A DNA stretch of 45,390 nt from Macrostomum lignano (GCA_002269645.1 NIVC01001906.1:1-45390); one strand, 5' to 3'; shown: positions 3,158 through 45,390, counted from the first letter of the stretch. A program made the numbers and translations. Notes: generated by a model from the letters alone, not told the origin.

Positions 3158-6042
3158 ATGCTGCCATTCAGACGCGCACTCCGCTGCTTATGCGCACCGC
3201 TGCACCATTGCGGCTCCTGTTTCTATGTGTGCGGCGAAATCTGCTGCGAGGTGGTTAAAAATCCAGCCTTTCTAGTCGTATTCATCATCTTGTGCATTCA
3301 CAGCACTATATTAATCAGCTATTTCACATTCGCTAATACGGCTAAGCCAAAGCCCGGCCCGACTAAACCAAATCCTCTTGACGCTATTATGGCTCTACCA
3401 GAGTACAACGTGTTCTTAAAAGTGGCTAACGACACGTCATCCGAGTCGGTTCATATTGGCAGCGAAGACTTCAAATATCCGTTGCTAGTTGACATGGTTC
3501 AACTAGTTAGCCGGGTGCGCCACAATCTGTCAGTGAATGTGGCGCCAATAAATCGGCATAATTTTCAATTTCCTATTAATCAGGCCGATCTGTGCAAACC
3601 GTATAAGCTCACTGGAAGGAGTCAGCAGAAGCAGCAGCAGCAGCAGCAACCTGCAATAGTGCTGGTGATTAAATCAGCTCTCAGTCATTTCGATCAACGA
3701 CAATTAATCAGGGAAACTTGGGGCAACTTTGATTGCTGGCCAACTGCTGGCTCAGCTTCTTCTTCATCGTCTTCCTCATCATCATCATCATCATCCAGTT
3801 CCGTAAATAAAGTCCGTCGAGTATTCATGGTTGGCCAGCCGAAATCTGCCGATCCAAAATCTTCGGAGTATGCCGAAAAATTGGCTAAAGAAGTGGCTAA
3901 ATATGGCGACATAGTGCAAGCAGACTTTGTCGATCATTATTTTAATAATACGCTGAAGATGATGTCCAGTTTCAGCTGGATGATTGCTCATTGTCAGGGT
4001 GCGAGGTGAGACACCTTTGGGAGTACCTGTCAGTCTGTTTTATCATTCGAATCCCAATAACCCATCCACAAAATCATTCGAATCCCAATGACCCATCCAC
4101 AAAATCATTCGAATCCCAATGACCCATCCACAAAAGCATTCGAATCCCAATGACCCATCCACAAAAACATTCGAATCCCATTGAGCCATCCACAAAAACA
4201 TTCAAATCCCAAAAACCCATCCACAAAAGCATTCGAATCCCAATGACCCATCCACAAAATCATTCGAATCCCAATGACCCATCCACAAAATCATTCGAAT
4301 CCCAATGACCCATCCACAAAAGCATTCGAATCCCAATGACCCATCCACAAAATCATTCGAATCCCATTGACCCATCCACAAAATCATTCGAATCCCAATG
4401 ACCCATCCACAAAAACATTCGAATCCCAATGACCCATCCACAAAAACATTCGAATCCCAATGACCCATCCACAAAATCATTCGAATCCCAATGACCCATC
4501 CACAAAATCATTCGAATCCCAATGACCCATCCACAAAAACATTCGAATCCCAATGACCCATCCACAAAATCATTCGAATCCCAATGACCCATCCACAAAA
4601 TCATTCGAATCCCAATGACCCATCCCCAAAAACAGTCGAATCCCAATAACCCATCCACAAAAGCATTCGAATCCCAATGACCCATCCACAAAATCATTCG
4701 AATCCCAATGGCCCCTGAAGTTCGAATCGCCGCGACAATCCCAAGTAGATAAAAATGGTTTCCTCACTCGCGCAGATTCGCCTTCTTCTTGGACGACGAC
4801 TACGTTGTCAACCCGTTGAATTTGGTCCGGTTTGCCGATGCCATTCCGCCCGAGTCCTACGCAGGCACAATGGCCGGTTTTGTCTGGCGCAATGCGGCCC
4901 CGGTTCGTCGGGCGCCCAAGCGCAATCCGCAGAGCCGCTGGTTGATATCCTATCGAGAATATCCCTGGCCAATGTATCCGGCTTACGTGTCTGCCGGCGC
5001 GTTTCTGGTGTCTATGCCGGTTATTAAGGACTTCACTATCGCTATGGAATATACTAGGTAGGGAGTCTGCTGCGTTGCTTTGCTGTTAGCCAAGTTGCTG
5101 GTTAATGAACACAAATACTAATAGAAGAAAATAAGTAGTGGAAGAGATGAGGGAAAAGGGCGGAAGAGAGGAGGGAAGGGGCCGAAGAGAGGAGGGAAGG
5201 AGCGAAAGGATGAGAGGAGGGAAGGGGCGGAAGAGAAAAGGGAGGGGCGGAAGAGAGGAGGGAGGGGCGGAGGAGAGAAGGGAAGGGGCGGAAGAGAGGA
5301 GAGAAGGGCGGAAGAGAGGAGAGAAGGGCGGAAGAGAGGAGGGAAGGGCGGAAGAGAGGAGGGAGGGGCGGAAGAGAGGAGGGACGGGGCGGAAGAAAGG
5401 AGGGAGGGGGCGGAAGAGAAGAGGAAAGGGCGGAATAGAGGAGGGAGGGGCCGGAGAGAGAAGGGAAGGGGCGGAAGAGAGGAGGACGGGGCGGAAGAAA
5501 GGAGGGAGGGGGCGGAAGAGAAGAGGAAAGGGGCGGAAGAGAGGAGGGAGGGGCCAGAAAAGAGAAGGGAAGGGGCGGAAGAGAGGAGGGAAGGGCGGAA
5601 TAGAGGAGGGAGGGGCCAGAAAAGAGAAGGGAAGGGGCGGAAGAGAGGAGGGAAGGGCGGAATAGAGGAGGGAGGGGCCAGAAAAGAGAAGGGAAGGGGC
5701 GGAAGAGAGGAGGGAATGGCGGAAGAGAGGAGGGAGGGGGCGCAGGACAGAACAGTTTTATAAGGTGAAAGAAGCTGTGAATTGAATTTCATTGTCAGGT
5801 ACCTCCGCTTCGATGACGTCTTCCTGGGCATCCTGATGCACAAGCTGCGCATTGTGCCGTTGCACGCTGAACGAATTCACAGCTTCAGTCCGGTTTACCC
5901 AGACAGTCCCAGCTTCCCTGGCCTCATCGCCAGCCACGGCTACGCCAGAAAAGCTGATAAAGTCCGAGCCGCTTGGTCGGAGATTCTCAATCGAACTGGA
6001 GCAGAGAACAGATTACCACTAGAGTGCATGCTGTCTATGTAA
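3158..6042 (+). CDS. GT31 family beta-1,3-glycosyltransferase (brainiac/B3GALT-like), 3 exons, 457 aa
   Basis: Exons 3158-4005, 4776-5057, 5799-6042; both introns phase 2, total 1374 nt. N-terminal TM segment, IKSALSHFDQRQLIRETWG, YGDIVQADFVDHYFNNTLK, DxD motif FLDDDY, YPAYVSAGAF, RFDDVFLG. A GTAAGT at 6039 overlaps the stop, so a further exon cannot be excluded. Confidence 0.92.
4042..4712. repeat. 31-bp minisatellite (AAAATCATTCGAATCCCAATGACCCATCCAC) filling GT31 intron 1
   Basis: About 21 tandem copies directly visible. Confidence 0.96.
5140..5742. repeat. Purine-rich minisatellite (GGGGCGGAAGAGAGGAGGGA-like) in GT31 intron 2
   Basis: Directly visible; strong strand asymmetry (G/A on +). 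Confidence 0.93.
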
Positions 6043-7774: not shown

Positions 7775-7932
7775 CAGAGGTCGCAAAGTGTTTTTTAACC
7801 TTAAGGGCCAGATCGCAAACTTAGCTCATGGCAGCGGGAAGAGAGGAGAGAGCAGAGAAGAGACGCAAACCTTGAGCAGACCGGATTTCCAAAGGACCTG
7901 AGGGCCAGATAGAGAGGCTTTGCCTACCTCTG
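7775..7932. mobile_element. hAT (Charlie-like) MITE, 158 bp
   Basis: Ends CAGAGGTCGCAAA / TTTGCCTACCTCTG; degenerate 8-bp TSD GTTTAGCT / ATTTAGTT (6/8 match). Confidence 0.7.
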
Positions 7933-8446
7933 ATTTAGTTCAACCATTCGTAGGAAGATGTTGTCACGTTTTTCGGGATTTGGGATTTTTTGAAAAGCAA
8001 TATATTCAAGTCTCACTCGTCCCCCTCATGTTTAAAACAAGACCTCCAAAATGTAATAGGCTATATAGCCTCATCATTTCCAAAAAAAGATTTTAACCAC
8101 TCGCTTATTAGTATCTGTTTGTCTGATAGTTGTAATGGAGTCATAATGAATTATTCGAAAACTTGTTTGCAAATTAATCTACTTTTGTCTTCCTTTAATC
8201 TCAGTTTTTATCAGCTGGATCTAAGCAGATTCTATTTTGCTTTCTGTACGAATATAACCTAGATGTATTTCGTCTGTGGTCGCTTTAAAGTTTTGTTGCA
8301 ACGAATATTTCTTTCAGTTAGAAAACACGAAGAAATGAGAAATTATGTAAAATAGACACGGTGCACAGTGCGCTGCTGATGTAAAATTCAGACGTTTTCT
8401 TTTTGTCTTTGTTTTTATCTGGGCTATTGAGTGCACCGATTGCTTA

Positions 8447-8880
8447 TTGGACTGGGGAGTGGGGTGGTTATTTATTGGACTAGGGAGTGGGATGGTTGTT
8501 TATTGAACTAGAGAGTGAGGTGGTTGCTTATTGGACTGGGGAGTGAGGTGGTTATTTATTGGACTAGAGAGTGGGGTGGTTGTTTATTGAACTAGAGAGT
8601 GAGGTGGTTTCTTATTGGATTGGGGAGTGGGGTGGTTATTTATTGGACTAGGAAGTGGGGTGGTTGTTTATTGAACTAGAGAGTGAGCTGGTTGCTTATT
8701 GGACTAGGGAGTGGGATGGTTACTTATTGGACTAGGGAGTGGGGTGGTAGTTTATTGGACTAGGGAGTGGGGTGGTATTTTATTGGACTAGGGAGTGGGG
8801 TGGTAGTTTATTGGACTAGGGAGTGGGGTGGTTTCTTATTAGACTAGGGAGTGGGGTGGTTGCTTTTTGGACTAGAGAAG
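8447..8880. repeat. 28-bp minisatellite (TTATTGGACTAGGGAGTGGGGTGGTTGC)
   Basis: About 15 tandem copies visible. Confidence 0.94.
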
Positions 8881-9534
8881 GGGGTAGTTGTCTGACGCCA
8901 GTCATCTTTATTAGCTACGCCGTCATGTTTAAACTTATTTTTAGTCGCCCCGTTTGATGCTACTATCAAAGTTGCAGTAGTGTAACAAGTATATGCGCCT
9001 CTAATTACATGTATAATTTAAATAATTGAGTTACCATTTGCGATTAGCTCGACACTAGATTTTTTTATGACATACAGATTGCTTGTCATTCACTTGAATA
9101 AGCTTTATTATACGAGTACACAATGTAGGTGTAGCGCCTTCAAGCGCGCCTTTCAAAGTGTATCCTTATCTTTTATGCATGTACATGCAGTTCAACTGGA
9201 CGCAAAGCAAAGCTCAAGAAAGGAATGCAGCGCTGAAAAAACACGTGCTTTTACATTGAAGTGTTTTCGACAGTCTATCTGTAAATTTCACTTATTTTAG
9301 CTGACAATGCAAAATTCTCGCACAGCAATGCAGTGGTGGATTATTAGAATATTCATGGCTAGCTTAGGTTTTAAGGTGTCTGCTTAAAGCAGAAAAAGAG
9401 GTGTGCTTGACTACACGGCTGAACTAAAGTGCTCTTTCACGCGTGAAACGAAGTAGTAAATAGCGTATTTATTACTGTACTTTGTCTTAACGGTCTTGTA
9501 CGCCACTGCACTAGGGGAGGCAGTATATAGGACA

Positions 9535-10040
9535 GTAATGAGAGTTGAGACAGCTAGTGTAGTAGAGACCGCGTGATGAGAGTAGAGTAGAGACTGATGA
9601 GAGTAGAGACCGTGAAGAGAGTAAGGAGACAGCAGGTCGGTACGATGAGAGTAGAGAGTATAGAGACCGCGTGATAAGAGTAGAGAACGTGGTGAAAGTA
9701 GAGAGTAGAGACCTGGTGAGAGTAGAGAGTGGAGAAGTGATGAGAGTAGTGAGACAGTGATGAGAGTAGTGAGACAGTGATGAGAGTAGGGAGACAGTGA
9801 TGAGAGTAGGGAGACAGTGATGAGAGTAGTGAGACAGTGATGAGAGTAGGGAGACAGTGATGAGAGTAGTGAGACAGTAATGAGAGTAGTGAGACAGTGA
9901 TGAGAGTAGGGAGACAGTGATGAGAGTAGTGAGACAGTGATGAGAGTAGTGAGACAGTGCTGAGAGTAGTGAGACAGTGCTGAGAGTAGTGAGACAGTGC
10001 TGAGAGTAGTGAGACAGTGATGAGTGTAGTGAGACACTAG
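9535..10040. repeat. 20-bp minisatellite (GAGACAGTGATGAGAGTAGT), degenerate at its left end
   Basis: Directly visible. Confidence 0.93.
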
Positions 10041-13641: not shown

Positions 13642-16397
13642 TCACATCATGCTGTTGCCCTCGAACGGCCTACATCTGGCTGAAGCGAAATAGGCCTTCA
13701 GCCGGGGCCTCGATTCCATCTGCTGTTTAAATCGGGCCAACAACGGATAAGACGAAATATTGGCCTTCCAAGCGTCCGGGAACTGCGACTCTGTGGCGCG
13801 TAGCACGTGCAACAGGCACAGGTCTACGTAGGTTAAACTGTTGCCAAAACAGTACAGCGAATCGGCGCTCTCTGGCTTGTCAACATTGTTATAACGCAGA
13901 GTGGCTTCAAAGTGCGGCAGGAACTTTGGTATACGATTAGCAATGAAATAATCGATATAGGGCTGGGTGAACTCTTGCTGATTATAGTAGGTTTCGTAAT
14001 GATTTTTGCCGTGAAAGGCTAGCCGACCCTCGGCAATGTAGTCCATCACAGTGGTGCACAGCTGGTCAGCTCGGAATTGATCGGCCTCGCTGGCTGGGAA
14101 CAGGCCGAACTGTTTGCCCAGGTAGCGGCACACTGTGCCAGTCTGGCCGAGCTCGAAATCGCCTGCGGCAAGATTTGCAATCCCATAGAGTAAAGTAACT
14201 ATCATGCTTTCTATACTACTCACTTAAGTACATGTAGCCTACCATCAATCAATTTAACCGCCTGTTCATGATTGTCTAAGACTCTACAAATCTGCTTCAG
14301 TATTACTAGCTGCTCATTACTCCTTCCCGTTCTGCTCATGATTCTTTTTATCTGCTCATGATTCCTTCTCATCTGCTCATGATTCCTTCTTATCTAGTCA
14401 TGATTCCTTCTTATCTAGTCATGATTCCTTCTCATCTGCTCACGATTCCTTCTTATCTAGTCATGATTCCTTCTTATCTGCTTGATTCCTTCTCATCTGC
14501 TCATGATTCCTTCTTATCTAGTCATGATTCCTTCTCATCTGCTCATGATTCCTTCTTATCTAATCATGATTCCTTCTTATCTGCTCATTATTCCTTCTTA
14601 TCTGCTTTTGATTCCTTTTCATCTGCTCATGATTCCTTCTTATCCAGTCATGATTCCTTCTCATCTGCTCATGATTCCTTCTTATCTAGTCATGATTTCT
14701 TCTCATCTGCTCATGATTCCTTCTCATCTGCTCATGATTCCTTCTCATCTGCTCATGATTCCTTCTCATCTGCTCATGATTCCTTCTCATCTGCTCATGA
14801 TTCCTTCTCATCTGCTCATTATTCCTTCTGTAGTGATCCGCTAGTTGATGCTAGGCGTCCCACTTTGTCAGCAGTCTCCCTCGCCCTCGCCCTGGGTTGC
14901 TGTCTGCCGCTGGTCAGCTTCCCACCCCCCTTGGCCCGTCTGTTGCTGCCCTTGGCCTGTTCTGCCCTTCTGCGTCTCTGTTCTCGGCCCTCAGCTTCTC
15001 TGCTGTGGGCTGTCTCTGTTTCGTTCCCGTCCCGTTTTCCTCTGTCATGTGAGCAAGTCACATGACAGACTCTGCGTTCTTCGAGTCCTAAAGTGCAGTA
15101 AACATGTTTACTGCACTCGTTGGCCCTGTTTACCGGGAGAATCACGTGCTTTCGGACCCCTCCCTTCTCTAAGGAGAGGAGTGACTCATGTTGCTAAAAA
15201 TAGCAACTGAGTCACAGCCGCGTGTACTCTGGCCGGAGACCTCAAGTGACGTCAGTTCTAAAAATAGAACGAGTCACGAGGTCTTGCGCGCACTGAGACC
15301 CTGCCTCGAGATCTCAAGTGACGTCAGTTCTAAAAATAGAACAAGTCACGAGGTCTTGTGCGTGGGTGTTTCCCGGCTATAAATAGGACCCCTCTCCCCT
15401 TGTTTCCGTCAAGGAATTGATTGGCTTCTTATCTGCGGAGAATTCACTTAGATCCCGTGTGCGTCAGTGTCTAACTAAGTGCCCTTTGCGTACTGAATCC
15501 GTTTGTACTGGTCTGACTGAGACCCCACTAAAGCCCAAGCCTAAGGGAGGCTAACACTGCCTTCCCAGCCACCCCTGAGCCCGGCGGGGATCTGCTGATC
15601 AGGACGCCTTGTTCGTTAATCTGCAAATCTGCACGCTGTGCTGAGTTCGTTGACTTGTTTATTTCGTTCCGACGGGAAGCTCACCTCATCGAAGGCCGAG
15701 ACCTGAAGGAACTGGTGGCAGCACTACCTACGCTACTGAGCGTTGACAGAACTTCCCACTGAAGAGGCTCGAGTCATAAGGTCATCCGCAAGGGCCTAAT
15801 CCGGGAAGCAAACAGCCTGTACTTCACTGGTGGCAGCGGTGGGATTCAAAGACCTACCAGGCCACCCCGAGAAAACCCCATAAGTATTTCACTTCTTATC
15901 TGCTTATGATTCCTTCTCATATAGTCATGATTCCTTCTCATCTAGTCATGATTCCTTCTCATATAGTCATGATTCCTTCTCATCTAGTCATGATTCCTTC
16001 TTATCTGCTCATGATTCCTTCTCATATAGTCATGATTCCTTCTCATCTGCTCATGATTTTTCCCGCACTGCTCATGGGTCATGGCTGTTTCTATTTCTAT
16101 CTATACGTGACTGTGACTGCCTCTGCCAATGGCTGTTCTCACTGCTCAAAATCGTTTCCCTCTGTTTATTCTTTAAAAAAATATTTTACACTTATGCTCT
16201 CACTCACCCTTCTTTATCATAGGCACAGCGAACACGGGCCAACCAACCTTACTTTGGCCTTTAAATTTATCAGTCAGCGGCTGGGGATCGTTCACTTCTT
16301 TGTAGGCGACTCCGGCCTCTTCAAACATGAGGCGAACGAATTCGCCTCGACCGGCTAGAGGCCAGTACCAGAGCTCCCACTCAGCTTCGGATGACAT
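13642..16397 (-). CDS. Glutathione S-transferase (Tyr-type), 2 exons, 236 aa
   Basis: Exons 16397-16208 and 14162-13642; phase-1 intron, total 711 nt. WELWYWPLAGRGEFVRL, FAVPMIKKG-DFELGQT, LTYVDL, RPRLKAYFAS. Confidence 0.93.
14330..16060. repeat. 21-bp minisatellite (ATGATTCCTTCTCATCTGCTC) in the GST intron, split by a solo LTR (14330-14828 and 15892-16060)
   Basis: The same unit resumes in register after the insertion. Confidence 0.95.
14829..15891 (+). mobile_element. Solo LTR, 1063 bp (Ty3/Gypsy-like by 4-bp TSD)
   Basis: TG...CA termini (TGTAGTG / TATTTCA); 4-bp TSD CTTC; TATAAA at 15378; duplicated enhancer-like segment; no coding capacity. Orientation inferred from the TATA box. Confidence 0.8.
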
Positions 16398-20100: not shown

Positions 20101-21902
20101 TGTATTCAACATCGTTAAATTAGCTAAAATACTGGCACATTCAACAAACAAACAAAAATAATTTTCTATTTCACTGAAAAAATTACACATAGAAACTACG
20201 ATGCCAGCTCGTAAAGGCTTTGCGGGCGGATTTGGTGGAGAAATGGCGACTTCTGTAGCTAAAAAGACAATAAATGTGATTCTTTATTAAAATTAAAACA
20301 TGATAATGTAGCTGAAAATGACAATAATTAACTAACACTAACCTAAAAAAACAAAATACAAGACGCGAACTCACTTTCAACAATTTGGCTCATTTGTACG
20401 CACTGAGCAACTACGCTTTTATATTGCTCATAATCAGTGCTCATCATTTCGGCAGCCTCGGGATTCAATATTAGCTGAGCATTTGGCTCAGTTAGCTGCT
20501 GTTGAATGCTGCTCAATAAATCGGCTAAAGAAACTGACGCGTTCCATTTCTGCGGATCGTCCAGATAAGGACATGCAACACGACCAGTGTCCGGTTCAAC
20601 TGCGAATGGCAAAGCGAAAATGTAGATTGGTACTAGGGATTGCAATCTCGGGATCCCGGGATCCCGAAATCCCGGGATTTGGGGTCCCGAATCCTTTTTA
20701 AACAAATTACTTTTATAATCAACGCACAAGTCGTAGGACTACTGTTAGTACTATAAAAATTAATGTTGCAGGTATTTTTTAACAGAGCTCTTGAAAAACT
20801 ACACAAAGATCAATAATAGCTCGCAATTAAACTAAACGAGTATTGTTTTGGTAATAAAATACATTTTTGACTGAACTAACCTCAGGTCATTACCCATTAC
20901 ATTACCCTAATACACCCTACTCACTAAGTAGTTAAAAAATAATCTTTGTTTGACCTAGAGGACATCTTAGCACTATATTAATAAATAATAAAAACATCTC
21001 TTACCATTAGGATGAAATGGCACAGTCACAAAATTAGCCTCAGGTGGCACATAATTGTAGCTCTCGGAGAATCTTAGTCTGAGCTTCAATACGCCACCGT
21101 CCCACAGAGTGTCTGGTAGGCCTTTGATCTTTGCCGACAGTGAAAATAGATTGCCGGCCCTGGTTGGATAGACTCGGATGCCCTGAATTTTGAAGGATTG
21201 GGCCGATTCCCAATGAGGTTAGAGGGCGATTCCCAATGAGGTTAGAGGGCGATTCCCAATGAGGTTAGAGGGCGATTCCCAATGAGGTTAGAGGGCGATT
21301 CCCAATGAGGTTAGAGAGCGATTCCTAATGAGGTTAGAGGGCGATTCCCAATGAGGTTAGAGGGCGATTCCTAATGAGGTTAGAGGGCGATTCCCAATGA
21401 GGTTAGAGGGCGATTCCCAATGAGGTTAGAGGGCGATTCCCAATGAGGTTAGAGGGCGATTCCCAATGAGGTTAGAGGGCGATTCCTAATGAGGTTAGAG
21501 GGCGATTCCCAATGAGGTTAGAGGCCGATTCCCAATGAGGTTAGAGGGCGATTCCCAATGAGGTTAGAGGGCGATTCCTAATGAGGTTAGAGGGCGATTC
21601 CCAATGAGGTTAGAGGGCGATTCCCAATGAGGTTAGAGGGCGATTCCCAATGAGGTTAGAGGGCGATTCCCAATGAGGTTAGAGGGCGATTCCTAATGAG
21701 GTTAGAGGGCGATTCCTAATGAGGTTAGAGGGTGATTCCTAACGAGGTTAGAGGGCGATTCCTAATGAGGTTAGATGGCGATTCCCGGTAGATTTCCAAA
21801 GTACTGATTCAATAGACTTACCTTAACAGGATTACGTTCAAATTTTAGCAATTCCTGTTCAATGAGCAGGTAAGCTCGGGAATGCACCACAGATGATGCC
21901 AT
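17136..21902 (-). CDS. UBE2U: Ubiquitin-conjugating enzyme E2 U-like, 7 exons, 352 aa
   Basis: Exons 21902-21822, 21182-21005, 20599-20375, 19176-18946, 18645-18603, 18511-18384, 17308-17136; phases all match, total 1059 nt. HSRAYLLIEQE, VPFHPNVEPDTGRVACPYLDDPQKWN, ISFETYHADWSKLATSK and EAEDLVQWT resemble UBE2U motifs as I recall them, in both the UBC domain and the tail. Confidence 0.9.
17400..18255. repeat. 28-bp minisatellite (GCTGGCCCAGCAACTGAGGATCTGGGAG) in UBE2U intron 6
   Basis: About 30 copies visible. Confidence 0.96.
18697..18925. repeat. Degenerate ~34-bp repeat (CCCATAGACAAATGTACACTCT core) in UBE2U intron 4
   Basis: About 6 diverged copies. Confidence 0.8.
19540..19690. repeat. 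Same ~34-bp repeat family in UBE2U intron 3
   Basis: About 4 copies of the CCCATAGACAAATGTACACTCT core, same orientation as 18697-18925. Confidence 0.8.
21205..21787. repeat. 23-bp minisatellite (GATTCCCAATGAGGTTAGAGGGC) filling UBE2U intron 1
   Basis: About 25 near-identical copies. Confidence 0.97.
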
Positions 21903-24479: not shown

Positions 24480-24795
24480 AAATCGATCAGATCAAAGTTT
24501 AGGAATCGATCAGATCAAAGTTTTAAAATCGATCAGATCAAAGTTTTAAAATCGATCAGATCAAAGTTTAAGAAATCGATCTGATCAAAGTTTTAAAATC
24601 GATCAGATCAAAATTTTAAAATCGATCAGATCAAAGTTAAGAAATCGGTCAGATCAGTTTAAGAAATCGGTCAGATCAAAGTTAAGAAATCGATCAGATC
24701 AAAGTTGAAGAATCGATTAGATCAAAGTTTAAGAAATCGATTAGATCAAAGTTGAAGAATCGATCGGATCAAAGTTGAAGAATCGATCGGATTAA
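24480..24795. repeat. ~21-22-bp minisatellite (AAATCGATCAGATCAAAGTTTT)
   Basis: Directly visible. Confidence 0.92.
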
Positions 24796-24903
24796 AATTC
24801 AAACATTTCTTTATTGACTACTTCAAGTAGCCAAATGAAAAGTGCAATAAAACTGCTAAAACTTCTAACGATAAAACTAATCTCATCGCTCTACCCCAAG
24901 AAA

Positions 24904-27900
24904 TCAGAATGAATATGACGACAGCCAATACATTCCGCGCAGACGGCTACGCAATTCGGCCTTCTGAGCATCCGTGACATTGAGCCAAAGCGGCACCATG
25001 AGTCGCTCCTCAAGCAGCAGGTGATCTTCATAGAAATCAGCCAGCCCGTTAACAGCGCCGGCCAGAGATTTTCTAGCGTCGCCGTTGGCGCCACCGGAAG
25101 CGCCGGCAGCGATTGCCTCAGTGGCTTTCTTCACTACTTCGTTGAACTTGCCATGCTGATTGTCGATCTCTTGCCAGAACTGAGCGAACTGAGGATAGGC
25201 CTCTTTGAAGTAGGGGAACAGTTGAGCGTCTTCGAACTCCGAATGGGGAGCGTTCTTTTTTAGAAATCCCTGCAAATGACTGTCCACGTCGGCGACCTGT
25301 TGAACAAAAAATTAAATGAGAAAAAAATTTATAATCCTACTTTTAGTAGACAAAAAGACTTTTTTTCAATAAGTTTGCGATTTACAAAAAGAGTAATAAA
25401 AATGAGGATTCTTAGAAATGACTACTAGGGCGGCTATTGGAAAGGGTAACGGGGGCGATTCTTAGAAAAGGTATCAGAGGGAATTATTAGAAGAAACGGT
25501 ATCAGAGGGAATTCTTGGAAACGGTATCAGAGGGAATTCTAAGAAACGGTATTAGAGGGAATTCCTAGAAACGGTATCAGAGGGAATTCTAAGAAACGGT
25601 ATCAGAGGGAATTCTAAGAAACGGTATCAGAGGGAATTCTTAGAAACGGTATCAGAGGGAATTCTTATAAAAGGTATCAGAGGGAATTATTAAAAGAAAC
25701 GGTATCAGAGGGGATTTTTGGAAATGGTATCAGGGGGGGTTCTTGAAAATGATACTAGGGGCGATCCTCTAATGGGATATTAGAACTCTCTTGTAAAAGG
25801 CAAAGCGATCTGATGAATTTACGCAGAGATTGAAAGAGCCTTTGCCCCACCTGAGCGGCAGTCAAGTCGGCATCGCCGGCCACAGTCTGGCGCAGGGCGG
25901 TCAGCCGCTTTCTAAATCCATCGTGAGAGTACATCCACATGCGCAACAGGCCCTTATTGGGATGCTGCTGCCAGACACCGCGCCAGAAGTCGCTGCGAAC
26001 GGCCAACTTCAGCATAGCGGCCAGATCAGCGTCAGACACTTCAGCGGCCGGAGGCACACCCAGCTGGGCGAGATGTTCGATTAGTTTCTCACGGGACATG
26101 CTCTCAATGTTGGCTTCAACAACTTGACGGCTGCTGTTGCCAGCCGGCAGGCCCAGCCGGACGCCTTGAATAGCGGCGTCGCGTGTTTCGTCGGCTTCGT
26201 TCGACGATTTGTTGTTGTCGCCGGCTCCGCCAGCTTCGGCGCGCTGGCGTACGTCGGCAAGAGTGTAGCTCTGTTGGGCACCCTGTAATTGACAGTTTAT
26301 ATAAGTTTAGTAACCGCTTCCGGACATTTGCCCTCCGGCACTTCCCCTCCGGCACTTGCCCTCCGGCACTTCCCCTCGGCGGCGTTTGCCCTCCGGACAT
26401 TTGCCCTCCGGGACATTTCCCCTCCGGACATTTGCCCTCCGGACATTTCCCCTCGGGGACATTTGCCCTCGGGGACATTTGCCCTCCGGACATTTCCCCT
26501 CCGCACATTTGCCCTCTGCAAATTTACCCCCTCGCACATTACTCACCTCACCTCCTCCTGTACCCACCCGTCGTTCCTCCAGCACCAACCTCATCCTCCC
26601 GCCTCTTGCATCCATCAGGTTCTTCTCCAGCCAACAACTCATCCTTTTCTAGTAAGCAATATATACCCGCGCCCTACCCTATCCCCAGCCTTACCTGTAC
26701 TTTTCCAGAGGGGAAATGTCCGGAGGGCAAATGTCCGGAGGGGAAATGTCCCCGAGGGCAAATGTCCCCGAGGGCAAATGTCCGGAGGGCAAATGTCCGG
26801 AGGGCAAATGTCCCCGAGGGCAAATGTCCTCGAGGGCAAATGTCCGGAGGGGAAATGCCGGAGGGCAAATGTCCGGAGGGCAAATGCCGGAGGGCAAATG
26901 TCCGGTAGCCTTTAGTAACATTGCTAGATGGCTGAATATTTTGAGTCTGAAAGTTCCAGGACTGAGAGACTGATTCTAAGCTGTCTCTAGGCTAGTTTTG
27001 GGTGCTCTTTAAGGGAGTTAGAGATGCACTTGAGACAGGATGAGTGCCCGATGATACTCTTGGGTGAGTGCCAGATGATACTATTGGATAAGTGCCGGAT
27101 GATACTCTTGGGTGAGTGCCAGATGATACTCTTGGGTGAGTGCCAGATGATACTCTTGGATGAGTGCCGGAGGATATTCTTCAGATGCCAGAATATACGC
27201 TAATTCAGATGCCATAAAGATACTCTTTAGATTCCATAAAGATACTCTTTAGATGTCATAAAGATACTCTTTAGATGCCATAAAGATACTCTTCAGATGC
27301 CATAAAGATACTCTTCAGATGCCATAAAGATACTCTTCAGATGCCATAAAGATACTCTTCAGATGCCAGAATATACTCTTCAGTTGCCAGATGATACTAT
27401 TGGATAAGTGCCAGATGATACTATTGGATAAGTGCCAGATGATACTATTGGATAAGTGCCAGATGATACTATTGGATAAGTGCCAGATGATACTCTTGGG
27501 TGAGTGCCAGATGATACTCTAGGATGAGTGCCGGAGGATATTCTTCAGATGCCAGAATATACGCTAATTCAGATGCCATAAAGATACTCTTCAGATGCCA
27601 TAAAGATACTCTTCAGATGCCAGAATATACTCTTCAGTTGCCAGATGATGATACTCTTGGATGAGTGCCAGATGATACTCTTGGATGAGTGCCAGATGAT
27701 ACTCTTGGATGAGTGCCAGATGATACTCTTGGATGAGTGCCAGATGATACTCTTGGATGAGTGCCAGATGATACTCTTGGATGAGTGCCAGATGATACTA
27801 TTGGATAAGTGCCAGATGATACTATTGGATAAGTGCCAGATGATACTATTGGATAAGTGCCAGATGATACTATTGGATAAGTGCCAGATGATACTCTTGG

Positions 27901-30210
27901 GTGAGTGCCAGATGATACTCTAGGATGAGTGCCGGAGGATATTCTTCAGATGCCAGAATATACGCTAATTCAGATGCCATAAAGATACTCTTCAGATGCC
28001 AGAATATACTCTAATTCAGATGCCATAAAGATACTCTTCAGATGCCAGAATATACTCTTCAGATGCCAGAATATACTCTTCAGTTGCCAGATGACACTCT
28101 TGGATGAGTGCCAGATGATAATCTAGGATGAGTGCCAGATAATACTCTTGGATGAGTGCCAGATGATACTATTGGATAAGTGCCAGATGATACTATTGGA
28201 TAAGTGCCGGATGATACTCTTGGGTGAGTGCCAGATGATACTCTTGGGTAAGTGCCAGATGATACTCTTGGGTGAGTGCCAGATGATACTCTTGGGTGAG
28301 TGCCAGATGATACTCTAGGATGAGTGCCGGAGGATATTCTTCAGATGCCAGAATATACGCTAATTCAGATGCCATAAAGATACTCCTCAGATGCCATAAA
28401 GATACTCTTTAGATGCCATAAAGATACTCTAATTCAGATGCCATTAAGATACTCTAATTCAGATGCCATAAAGATACTCTTCAGATGCCATAAAGATACT
28501 CTTCAGATGCCAGAATATACTCTTCAGTTGCCAGATGATACTCTTGGATGAGTGCCAGATGATATTCTTGGATGAGTGCCAGATGATACTCTTGGATGAG
28601 TGCCAGATGATACTCTTGGATGAGTGCCAGATTATACTCTTGGATGAGTGCCAGATGATACTCTTGGATGAGTGCCAGATGATACTCTTGGATGAGTGCC
28701 AGATGATACTATTGGATAAGTGCCAGATGATACTATTGGATAAGTGCCAGATGATACTATTGGATAAGTGCCAGATGATACTATTGGATAAGTGCCAGAT
28801 GATACTCTTGGGTGAGTGCCAGATGATACTCTAGGATGAGTGCCGGAGGATATTCTTCAGATGCCAGAATATACGCTAATTCAGATGCCATAAAGATACT
28901 CTTTAGATGCCAGAATATACTCTAATTCAGATGCCATAAAGATACTCTTTAGATGTCATAAAGATACTCTTTAGATGCCATAAAGATACTATTTAGATGC
29001 CATAAAGATACTCTTTAGATGCCATAAAGATACTCTAATTCAGATGCCATAAAGATACTCTTCAGATGCCATAAAGATACTCTTCAGATGCCAGAATATA
29101 CTCTTCAGTTGCCAGATGATACTCTTGGATAAGTGCCAGATGATACTCTTGGGTGAGTGCCAGATGATACTATTGGATAAGTGCCAGATGATACTATTGG
29201 ATAAGTGCCGGATGATACTCTTGGGTGAGTGTCAGATGATACTCTTGGGTAAGTGCCAGATGATACTCTTGGGTGAGTGCCAGATGATACTCTTGGGTGA
29301 GTGCCAGATGATACTCTAGGATGAGTGCCGGAGAATATTCTTCAGATGCCAGAATATACGCTAATTCAGATGCCATAAAGATACTCTTCAGATGCCATAA
29401 AGATACTCTTTAGATGCCATAAAGATACTCTAATTCAGATGCCATAAAGATACTCTAATTCAGATGCCATAAAGATACTCTTCAGATGCCATAAAGATAC
29501 TCTTCAGATGCCAGAATATACTCTTCAGTTGCCAGATGATACTCTTGGATGAGTGCCAGATGATACTCTTGGGTGAGTGCCAGATGATACTATTGGATAA
29601 GTGCCAGATGATACTATTGGATAAGTGCCGGATGATACTCTTGGGTGAGTGCCAGATGATACTCTTGGGTAAGTGCCAGATGATACTATTGGGTGAGTGC
29701 CAGATGATACTCTTGGGTGAGTGCCAGATGATACTCTAGGATGAGTGCCGGAGGATATTCTTCAGATGCCAGAATATACGCTAATTCAGATGCCATAAAG
29801 ATACTCTTCAGATGCCAGAATATACTCTAATTCAGATGCCATAAAGATACTCTTTAGATGCCATAAAGATACTCTTCAGATGCCATAAAGATACTCTTCA
29901 GATGCCATAAAGATACTCTTCAGATGCCATAAAGATACTCTTCAGATGCCATAAAGATACTCTTCAGATGCCATAAAGATACTCTTTAGATGCCATAAAG
30001 ATACTCTTCAGATGCCATTAAGATACTCTTTAGATGCCAGAATATACTCTTCAGATTACATTAAGATACTCTTTAGATGCCAGAATATACTCTTCAGTTG
30101 CCAGAGGATACTCTTGGAGGAGTGCCAGGAGTACTCTTAAAGCGAGACTCTCTATAGTCAGTTAGATGGTCCGAGACGTGGCCAGATATTTTTCAAATTA
30201 TTCTTACCAT
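24904..30210 (-). CDS. Hemerythrin-like (HHE cation-binding) domain protein, ~275 aa, probable ATG-only first exon
   Basis: Exons 26282-25851 and 25296-24904 join at phase 0 and carry MYSHDGF (H), HSEFE (HxxxE), NQHGK (H) and HLLLE (HxxxE). The start codon is inferred from AAAACACATG|GTAAGA at 30210-30208 (less certain). Confidence 0.78.
25420..25760. repeat. ~22-23-bp minisatellite (AAACGGTATCAGAGGGAATTCTT) in hemerythrin gene intron 2
   Basis: Directly visible. Confidence 0.92.
26315..26910. mobile_element. Mutator-like foldback non-autonomous element, 596 bp
   Basis: 9-bp TSD TTTAGTAAC (26306-26314, 26911-26919); termini CGCTTCCGGAC / GTCCGGTAGCC (9/11 inverted match); inverted arrays of ~15-bp GGACATTTGCCCTCC units around a ~180-bp spacer. 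Confidence 0.85.
27040..30140. repeat. Higher-order minisatellite alternating 24-bp and 22-bp unit blocks
   Basis: Units GATGATACTCTTGGATGAGTGCCA and GATGCCATAAAGATACTCTTCA, joined by a conserved linker seen 7 times. Confidence 0.96.
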
Positions 30211-30934
30211 GTGTTTTTTTTTATGAACAGATTGCAAGACTGTTAGACTCGGGAGTCAATGACCGAAATTGTGAGTTATTTATCAGCAGTCGCCGCGCTC
30301 TCCCAATGACAGACTCGATATTTAATAACGTCGAGTTAGATGCGCACGCGCACACTAGCATTCACGCCAACCCGCCCCCCCCCCCCATTCCAGGTCCCAC
30401 TTCCGCGACTTGAGCTCGTACCGCACCGGCGTACAGCGGGAAGGAGCAAGGAAGGGATAGTTTTTCTTTCCACATACAACTAATCGTACGGGGAACAAGG
30501 AAGGAGAGGATGGCGAAACTGATATACAGTTCCTTCTGCTCTATCCCCATATACCACATCTCCGCACCGCGCTTCCCTTCGCAGAGACCTCCCTGGCCCT
30601 ACTCTCATTCCTGTCGTTTTGATCAGTCAAGTAGTCCTTCTAACTCCTTCTAGCTACTAAAGAGAAACTAATCACAATCCTCTGTATCTCTAGAAACTGT
30701 GAGCCAAACAGGTGCAAGTCTAATATTAACCAATGAGGTCCAACCGACTTAACAACATGTACATTTAAAAGTAATCCAATGCGGAAGATGCTGTCAAGAA
30801 TCTTAATCTGTTTCCTAATCTGTTGCCTAGTTTCAAGGGCTAAAGCTCCTGTACCCAGGAGCTTAAACACAATATGGTGTTTGACAAATAAAGTTGACAG
30901 ATGTTTGTCAATAGACAAACGTAGCATAGCCTAG

Positions 30935-34059: not shown

Positions 34060-40717
<6,658 letters not shown>

Positions 40718-44500: not shown

Positions 44501-45390
44501 CTTTTATCTTTTTCTTGACGTTTATTTTCCTACTATTTTCAAAACTATCTTGTCTATATTATATTAACATGGATAATTAATATCTCCTTGAGTTATTGAG
44601 ATTGTTTAACTATATGCAATGAGTTAAAAAATGTTTTCAAGAAAATTATAGTTCTTTTTTGTACAAAAAAATAGAATTCTTTTATTTATAATGTGCTATA
44701 TTTGCTGTTTTCTTTACATTTTAATGTATGGCATTAAATTTGTGCAATCTGGGCTGTGTGTGGCACTAAATAATGCTTAAATCTTGGCTTTGTGTGGCAC
44801 TTAATGGGTGCTTAAATCTTGGCTTTGTGTGGCACTAAATAATGCTTAAATCTTGGGTTTGTGTGGCACTAAATAGGTGCTTAAATCTTGGCTTTGTGTG
44901 GCACTTAATGGTGTGTAAATCTCTACAATTCTCAAATCCCCGCTCTCCACTGTGAACACGCAGGCTCTGGAACTCCTCGATCGCAATGGGCCAGTAAGAC
45001 CAGCCTATTGACGTCTAGCTGTAGTGTAGCAATTAGCGACGATCCAGACGCCGACGAAGTGGCCGAAGCGGCCGATTTGCACAATGTCAAAGTCGTTACA
45101 CCGCAATGGGTGCTGCTATCGTGCAAGCTGCAGAATCAACAACAGATGGATTGGTTTCATCCAAGTATTAAGAAATTATTCCGCGGCGTTACAGCTTTCA
45201 TAGCTAAAGTTGGCCGACAGGACTGGTTCAATCTGTACGCTTTGTTGAGCTTCCGGGGCGCCGAAATGAAATGTCGATTAGATAATACTGTGACGCATTT
45301 TGTCACTACTCAGGCGGCGGCAGATTAATGGATCAATTGACTCAATTAAAGCTAGAGTACACGTTGTACTACCGGATTGGGTTACAGATT
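41504..45390 (+). CDS. PAXIP1: PAX-interacting protein 1 (PTIP) N-terminal tandem BRCT domains; partial, with frameshifts
   Basis: Exon 1 41504-41584 (MMNSTPANKLFAGMRYYVISCSDSDKL|GTAAGT); exon 2 from 44964 (ALELLDRNG..AISDDPDADEVAEA..VVTPQWVLLS..LFRGVTA..LYALLSFRG..VTHFV..HVVLPDWVTD) follows PTIP BRCT1-2 as I recall them. Three single-base deletions are needed to keep the frame. Runs off the window end. Confidence 0.8.
42454..42625. mobile_element. Palindromic hAT-type MITE, 172 bp
   Basis: Exact 8-bp TSD CATCTTAT (42446-42453, 42626-42633); right end GTTGCGCATGTATG identical to the TIR at 6674-6687; self-complementary around GTCACGTGAC (42537-42546). Confidence 0.88.
43481..43652. mobile_element. 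Palindromic hAT-type MITE, 172 bp, inverted relative to 42454-42625
   Basis: Exact 8-bp TSD TTTTCCCA (43473-43480, 43653-43660); left end CATACATGCACAAC; centre GTCACGTGAC (43560-43569). Confidence 0.88.
44750..44915. repeat. 34-bp minisatellite (GGCTTTGTGTGGCACTAAATAATGCTTAAATCTT) near the end of PAXIP1 intron 1
   Basis: About 5 copies visible. Confidence 0.9.

Follow-up and report, generated by a model that had tools for sequence, protein, structure and literature searches.

A hemerythrin-like gene of the flatworm Macrostomum lignano with a candidate spliced-leader start codon and a predicted N-myristoylation signal

A gene encoding a stand-alone hemerythrin-like protein with an HHE domain lies on the minus strand of a 45,390-nucleotide stretch of Macrostomum lignano DNA (GCA_002269645.1, NIVC01001906.1:1-45390). 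This whole stretch is referred to as the window, and positions are counted from its first letter. It appears likely that translation of the HHE gene starts at an AUG supplied by the spliced leader (SL) and that the product is a myristoylated di-iron protein held at a membrane.

Joining of the two genomic coding exons, with an ATG placed in front, gives a 275-residue protein, MGAQQSYT...SSYSF. The spliced protein is 98-100% identical to the M. lignano entries A0A1I8HXK9 and A0A1I8J8A8 (UniRef) and PAA92452.1 and PAA71700.1 (NCBI), and it is already present in UniProt under an automatic name. On the minus strand the first exon is bounded by the acceptor ttacag/GGT and the donor CAG/gtgggg (the slash marking the splice junction), and the second runs from the acceptor aacag/GTC to the stop codon TGA. 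Two further homeologous copies of the locus, L001 and L002, were taken from assembly GCA_002269645.1 for comparison with the window. The exon structure is identical in all three copies, and the reading frame and splice sites are kept in each. The features of the gene are as follows.

24810..24815, minus strand: AATAAA polyadenylation signal, ~90 nt past the stop codon
24904..25296, minus strand: second coding exon, Val146 to Phe275 plus TGA, holding H163xxxE167, H193 and H237xxxE241
25009..25245, minus strand: span of the predicted ligand codons H163 (25243-25245), E167 (25231-25233), H193 (25153-25155), H237 (25021-25023) and E241 (25009-25011)
25297..25850, minus strand: spliceosomal intron, GT...AG, phase 0, with splice sites conserved in L001 and L002
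25851..26282, minus strand: first genomic coding exon, Gly2 to Gln145, opening with GGT at the acceptor and having canonical splice sites
25923..25925, minus strand: codon for His121, the first predicted di-iron ligand, aligned with YtfE H84
25962-25964, minus strand: codon for His108, nearly invariant, a possible fifth His ligand
26268..26282, minus strand: codons Gly2-Ala-Gln-Gln-Ser6, an N-myristoylation motif once Met is joined
26283..26288, minus strand: splice acceptor TTACAG, fitting the M. lignano SL motif [T/C]TNCAG and conserved in L001 and L002
26289..30201, minus strand: outron (intron 1 if the start codon is encoded in cis), mostly 24-bp satellite plus a foldback transposon
30202..30210, minus strand: candidate end of a cis mini-exon, ATG/GTAAGA, with ATG in the window and L002 and ATA in L001

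The exon at 25851..26282 is 98-99% identical in L001 and L002, compared with ~92-95% for the flanking non-coding DNA, and its first 180 nt contain 0-1 differences between homeologs, compared with ~5-8% for non-coding DNA. Across the three copies, 8 synonymous and 7 non-synonymous substitutions were counted, against a neutral expectation of ~3.3 non-synonymous to 1 synonymous. The shortfall of non-synonymous changes has P ~0.01 for the window/L001 pair, and none of the changes alters a ligand. To judge from these comparisons, the HHE gene is a genuine, expressed-looking M. lignano gene under purifying selection.

That the protein is hemerythrin-like and stands alone, as proposed in the original prediction, was borne out by a Pfam scan. 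PF01814 (Hemerythrin HHE cation-binding domain) matched residues 114-248 far beyond chance, with E=5.2e-13 and a score of 50 bits (cut-off 25.3), and neither an F-box, a leucine-rich repeat (LRR) nor any Pfam domain other than PF01814 was found in the 275-residue protein. When 1.84 billion representatives were searched exhaustively with HMMER, only 80 matches reached E<1e-3 and 12 reached E<1e-10. Both this search and a consensus query were needed to recover the family: word-indexed searches reached only the worm's own cluster with the single protein, and the same cluster plus one diatom protein with the alignment. The better family matches are proteins of 230-280 residues that align over residues 46-270, well past the Pfam domain, and PF01814 matches all 23 aligned family members, with no other shared domain found among them.

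The ligand pattern H...HxxxE...H...HxxxE corresponds to H121, H163-E167, H193 and H237-E241, and the full set claimed from the sequence alone held up in the family. Among the 23 aligned members, H121, H163, E167 and H237 are invariant and H108, H193 and E241 nearly invariant; the other invariant residues are W101, W117, R125, F166, L171, E242 and W249. The family profile matched Escherichia coli YtfE (5fnn) among the PDB sequences with E=4e-8, which placed the ligands in register (H121=H84, H163/E167=H129/E133, H193=H160 and H237/E241=H204/E208). A search of the PDB with the single protein was set aside because it gave only spurious matches to globin and RifR, and the family profile was needed to reach YtfE.

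Structure prediction, which had been named as a check, agreed with this assignment. The AlphaFold2 model built from the family alignment is all-helical, with a predicted local distance difference test (pLDDT) score of 89.7 and a predicted template modelling (pTM) score of 0.88. Its long helices span residues 115-134, 143-178, 180-212 and 217-250, and the N-terminal extension is also helical and confidently modelled. The top Foldseek match in the PDB was the HHE protein NMB1532 (2p0n), with a probability of 0.98-0.99 and a TM score of 0.55-0.59 on the target. Against this stands the significance of the structural matches: the E value of the top PDB match was only 0.4 and none was <0.001, so that the fold is weakly supported by this comparison, as is usual for plain helical bundles. 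On the combined sequence and model evidence, the protein is classed as a stand-alone HHE four-helix-bundle protein with a complete set of predicted di-iron ligands.

By sequence criteria the worm protein is neither a RIC, an FBXL5-type sensor nor a respiratory hemerythrin; it is placed in the HHE-domain class because scores against the RIC/YtfE equivalog and classical hemerythrin models lie far below the cut-offs and no second Pfam domain is present. The best solved-structure relative by sequence profile is YtfE/RIC (E. coli 5FNN), the HHE bundle ligands of which are in register with those of the worm protein. YtfE/RIC proteins carry an N-terminal ScdA_N domain that is absent from the worm protein and from the 23 family members. 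The RIC/YtfE equivalog models NF008221 and TIGR03652 gave no match to the worm protein, and the family consensus reached only 23.3 versus 254 and 20.9 versus 204.7 bits, respectively. In contrast to YtfE, the worm protein is eukaryotic and has a predicted N-terminal lipidation signal and a helical N-terminal extension of its own of ~110 residues. NMB1532 (2P0N) and the Rv2633c-type protein (6Q09), which are stand-alone bacterial HHE bundles, were among the better Foldseek matches, but they are 13-14% identical to the worm protein and lack the myristoylation signal as well as the family motifs LHPN..RVKNWLWVH and, at the C terminus, YRSYLSWKY..MY.

The hemerythrin-like domain of FBXL5, which is animal and has HHE-type di-iron ligands, was a marginal profile match (E=0.04). 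FBXL5, an animal iron/oxygen sensor, is a fusion with an F-box and LRRs and acts via its own degradation, whereas the worm protein has no output domain. The classical hemerythrins, myohemerythrins and bacteriohemerythrins belong to the same Pfam clan and have the four-helix di-iron bundle in common with the HHE class. Their ligands are H, HxxxE, HxxxH and HxxxxD, whereas neither HxxxH nor HxxxxD occurs at the aligned positions of the worm protein, and the scores against the classical models were 20.8 bits versus a cut-off of 51.75 (TIGR02481) and 17.9 versus 84 (NF033749).

A conserved segment, EKLIEHLAQLGVPPAAEVSDADLAAMLKLA, was noted at residues 62-96 (window ~26000-26100, minus strand), with the family consensus EELxxxLxxLGVxxxxxxSxEELxxxLxxV. 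It is modelled as helix-extended loop-helix and by eye is SAP/HeH-like, and it has no Pfam match.

The first coding exon opens with the sequence GAQQSY, in agreement with the PROSITE-type pattern for N-myristoylation, G-{EDRKHPFYW}-x(2)-[STAGCN]-{P}, and either candidate ATG yields MGAQQS. The same kind of start is found in distant homologs, which strengthens the earlier reading of MGAQQS as a myristoylation signal: 12 of 22 begin with MG and fit the pattern (MG-x-x-x-S/T type), their starts including MGNSESQ, MGSGQST, MGSAASL, MGNSSSS, MGNSGSE, MGNSNTT, MGNGASL, MGNFLST and MGSQPSV. In one further homolog the motif occurs at an internal Met, which is perhaps the true start. The worm GAQQS, beginning at the first base of the exon, aligns with the MG N termini of the homologs, and the motif is apparently under selection because the linker that follows it is not conserved. 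Two observations run counter to a general signal: the remaining 10 of the 22 homologs have no MG start, some of these being truncated or mis-started models, and a subgroup with the start MxxxxP..LSV.Y seems truly to lack it. On the alignment as a whole, the predicted N-terminal MG-x-x-x-S/T signal is conserved in the family. MARCKS, a classic substrate of N-myristoyltransferase, likewise begins with MGAQ. No description of an N-myristoylated hemerythrin-like protein, or of a hemerythrin in Macrostomum, was found in full-text searches of the literature.

The mechanism by which the mRNA acquires its initiator methionine was considered next to the genomic sequence 5' of position 26282, where the in-frame reading is ...GY(stop)TYINCQLQ/GAQQS. 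Between that stop and the first base of the exon, the frame contains no ATG. Because the exon itself has no ATG at its start and is preceded by an in-frame stop, the Met must be spliced on. The M. lignano SL, CGGTCTCTTACTGCGAAGACTCAATTTATTGCATG, is 35 nt long and ends in ATG, ~30% of genes are trans-spliced, and the trans-splice acceptor motif is [T/C]TNCAG (PMC8629364). The acceptor of the first coding exon is TTACAG, and the internal cis acceptor of the same gene is CAACAG. Thus, the coding frame is open from the first exon base, the acceptor matches the trans-splice motif and no cis AUG is present in the exon at this point; with the SL joined at the acceptor, the mRNA would read ...ATG/GGT GCC and encode MGAQQS. 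Among flatworms, Schistosoma provides an established example of initiation at the SL AUG (Cheng 2006, cited in PMC9851317 and PMC12582326). The arrangement is the same as in Schistosoma mansoni, with a coding exon in frame at a trans-splice-type acceptor, no cis AUG and an SL ending in AUG. It differs in that the M. lignano case is argued from sequence and in that joining of the SL would create a Met-Gly myristoylation signal along with the start codon.

A precedent is found in the same window. RUVBL2 (reptin; window 38008-38163, minus strand; L001 258-430) has coding sequence starting at 38155, directly after the acceptor ttcattag. The in-frame codon before this point is TAG and the first cis ATG is that of Met45, and residues 9-44 align with residues 5-40 of human RUVBL2 (overall E=2e-70). 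No ATGGTRAG occurs upstream of RUVBL2 anywhere in the window. RUVBL2 probably uses the SL AUG, which would give M+AAQPAQ....

The SL-terminal AUG is quite likely to be the initiator of the HHE mRNA, in preference to the cis ATG at 30210. This is favoured because the SL ends in ATG, the acceptor fits the motif, L001 reads ATA at the cis site, the flanks of that site diverge at about the rate of other non-coding DNA, the public models lack Met (a point given little weight), and RUVBL2 provides a precedent. All five public protein models have artefactual N termini without a Met, and none has an upstream exon: two begin with LQ, translated from the intron sequence TTACAG, two begin at Ala3 or Gln4, and A0A1I8F7Y1 is frameshifted over its first ~46 residues. 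If the start is supplied by the SL, these N-terminal errors hide the lipidation signal in all five. No SL RNA gene was found in the window, and no mention of the gene ids Mlig016643 (= L001) or Mlig032384 was found in the searchable literature.

The original prediction had instead joined the ATG at 30210-30208 to the exon at 26282. Here, a promoter near 30.3 kb would drive a short first exon ending with that ATG, which would be spliced over a 3.9-kb satellite-filled intron to 26282. Part of this proposal stands, in that ATG/GTAAGA is present and the splice arithmetic works. The site conforms to the donor consensus, no other ATGGT with GTAAG occurs over the 7.8 kb upstream of the acceptor, both the window and L002 have it intact, and a TATA-like GATAAATA lies ~70 nt before it. 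A consensus donor of this kind, present in two of the three copies, would favour cis-splicing if carried on the same pre-mRNA, and this, together with the TATA-like element, counts against an SL start. So do the 5' ends of the Mlig_3_7 models, which are ragged at the neighbouring UQ_con and GST genes, making "partial" flags weak evidence; the raggedness is deduced from the public UQ_con/GST models, whose starts fall before or after the ATG by up to 3 nt. This single occurrence, however, does not exceed chance: ATGGTRAG should turn up 3.05 times per window (both strands) and ~0.26 times over the 7.8 kb that separate the RUVBL2 stop from the acceptor, so that one site there is roughly a 1-in-5 event.

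Comparison of the copies bears on both models. Every copy has a GTAAGA donor 0.85-3.9 kb before the acceptor, following ATG in two copies and ATA in the third, and if transcribed it may compete with trans-splicing. Against the cis start, the candidate reads ATA/GTAAGA in L001 (9149-9159; window 30202-30212), with the GTAAGA kept and the coding sequence intact. The ATG/ATA site and the acceptor are 3.9 kb apart in the window, ~2.25 kb in L002 and ~0.85 kb in L001. The flanks of the candidate ATG are ~92% identical among the copies, which is in the range of other non-coding DNA, whereas the exons are 98-99% identical. Moreover, the upstream exon is missing from all public models, whether transcript-based (PAA92452.1 and PAA71700.1) or UniRef, and RUVBL2 shows that a cis ATG is dispensable in this window. 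A cis start at 30210 is thus considered unlikely. A different first exon or start codon had been named as the change that would remove Gly2; Gly2 is kept under either an SL or a cis start, so that this part of the original prediction does not depend on the choice between them.

Initiation at Met62 (MSREKL...), the earliest cis-encoded ATG of the exon, would give a soluble HHE protein of 214 residues with no myristoylation and 180 nt of upstream 5' untranslated region, and is highly improbable given that those 180 nt show the near-absence of homeolog differences described above, that homologs align from residues ~46-60 with MGxxxS N termini that match the exon start, and that AlphaFold2 places confident helices at residues 30-61 (pLDDT 90-95).

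Two downstream genes also bear on SL usage. TTTCAG acceptors precede the cis ATGs of UQ_con and GST by 33 and 26 nt, respectively (L001 14121-14165 and 19737-19775; L002 20445-20490), and to judge from these motifs both genes are probably SL trans-spliced as well. An operon with RUVBL2 was considered and rejected: the RUVBL2 stop is 4.7-7.8 kb from the HHE acceptor, or ~3.5 kb without repeats, compared with a published 1-kb criterion.

With respect to its relatives, the worm protein is, within the collections searched, the only animal member found of a small algal/protist family. Named members come from green algae (Tetraselmis and Bryopsis), brown algae (Nemacystus and Choristocarpus), diatoms (Ditylum, Seminavis and Nitzschia), an oomycete (Saprolegnia), a labyrinthulid (Aplanochytrium) and a gregarine (Selenidium), with marine metagenome or transcriptome sequences making up the remainder. 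The exhaustive HMMER search recovered no homolog from another animal, in protein collections that cover other Macrostomorpha and many other invertebrates thinly. The worm protein is ~26-30% identical to its relatives and is the most divergent member, with a mean identity of 26% versus 36% among the others. A neighbour-joining tree was star-like, with M. lignano on a long basal branch and no donor clade.

The possibility raised earlier of horizontal acquisition is met halfway by these data, since the relatives are algal or protist with no other animal among them, but the tree identifies no source. Transfer from an alga or protist into the Macrostomum lineage, followed by domestication with the gain of two introns and an SL AUG recreating Met-Gly, is a tenable explanation that falls somewhat short of even likelihood. 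In its favour, every named relative is a chlorophyte, phaeophyte, diatom, oomycete, labyrinthulid or gregarine. M. lignano is a free-living flatworm that grazes on diatoms. The GC content at third codon positions (GC3) of the HHE coding sequence is 0.64, somewhat richer than the 0.42-0.62 of its neighbours, but it overlaps that of the neighbouring GST gene, and GC3 was dropped as a mark of foreign origin because the neighbour range overlaps. The low identity, the long basal branch and the star-like tree without a donor clade argue against transfer, as do the two introns of the HHE gene and its position among ordinary animal genes. The distribution also fits vertical descent, and the gene may be an old eukaryotic one that was lost from most animals.

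The fuller proposal, in which the gene for a di-iron protein tethered to a membrane came from an alga or protist, was captured by the Macrostomum lineage and then gained introns and trans-splicing, with the SL AUG recreating an ancestral Met-Gly, is regarded as doubtful. Were it correct, SL trans-splicing would have provided a horizontally acquired gene with its start codon and its lipidation signal alike. As the only animal member found, the worm protein is a testable candidate for gene transfer from an alga to an animal.

Contamination by algal food (Nitzschia) or other foreign DNA, to which the otherwise algal/protist family with one Nitzschia species among its members might point, is ruled out for practical purposes because the gene order RUVBL2 (TIP49), HHE, UQ_con E2 enzyme and GST on one strand is shared by L001 and L002, the three diverged homeologs are each flanked by RUVBL2, E2 enzyme and GST genes, the homeologous copies lie on 325-877-kb M. 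lignano scaffolds with worm-type satellites, and the identity to the Nitzschia protein is only ~31%.

The following minimal scheme can be proposed for the preferred reading, an SL-supplied start and a myristoylated product. The gene would lack a start of its own, its pre-mRNA would be SL trans-spliced at TTACAG/GGT, and the AUG of the 35-nt leader would initiate MGAQQS. Methionine aminopeptidase would then remove the Met and N-myristoyltransferase would acylate Gly2, so that the di-iron domain would be held at the cytosolic face of a membrane. In the last and weakest step, the membrane di-iron site may react with O2, NO or peroxide. A role as a sensor or detoxifier of iron, O2 or NO as originally suggested, is a reasonable inference from the predicted fold. 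A direct chemical role, such as RIC/YtfE-like scavenging, redox activity or iron-centre repair, is slightly favoured over a relay-type sensor because YtfE/RIC is the nearest characterized relative and the domain has no fusion partner. Alternatively, the protein may be a myristoyl-switch sensor acting through binding partners.

HHE and hemerythrin-like domains are already well known. What would be new is the conservation of an N-myristoylation signal within a compact eukaryotic family, an arrangement that would put an O2-, NO- or peroxide-reactive di-iron centre at the membrane; if the signal is functional, an undescribed eukaryotic family of N-myristoylated HHE proteins is indicated. The gene would also be a concrete example of how SL-AUG initiation distorts flatworm annotation, as would RUVBL2 in the same window. 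Transgenesis and RNA interference are available in M. lignano.

The remaining features noted in the window are listed below.

3158-5061, plus strand: beta-1,3-galactosyltransferase-like open reading frame
13642-14223, minus strand: GST exon
20343-20729, minus strand: UBC/E2 exon
24480-24803: satellite array just past the polyadenylation signal
25458-25748: 25-bp tandem array within the intron at 25297..25850 (intron 2)
26315..26906, no strand assigned: foldback-type transposon, ~590 bp, in the window copy only, with an empty site in L001 and L002
27041-30115 (L001 ~9240-9850; L002 ~7850-9850): 24-bp satellite in two interleaved variants, filling most of the region upstream of the HHE acceptor
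38213-38519: satellite array directly upstream of the RUVBL2 acceptor
45008-45328, plus strand: open reading frame resembling a BRCT domain by eye

The length of the 24-bp satellite differs among the homeologs, being ~3 kb in the window, 0.6 kb in L001 and 2 kb in L002. The foldback transposon consists of two arrays of 15-bp subrepeats (TCCGGAGGGCAAATG) in inverted orientation, its arms reaching 133 nt at 92% complementarity. It is flanked by a 9-bp duplication, GTTACTAAA, and was inserted 31 nt upstream of the acceptor, where the duplication preserves a branch-point-like TACTAAA.

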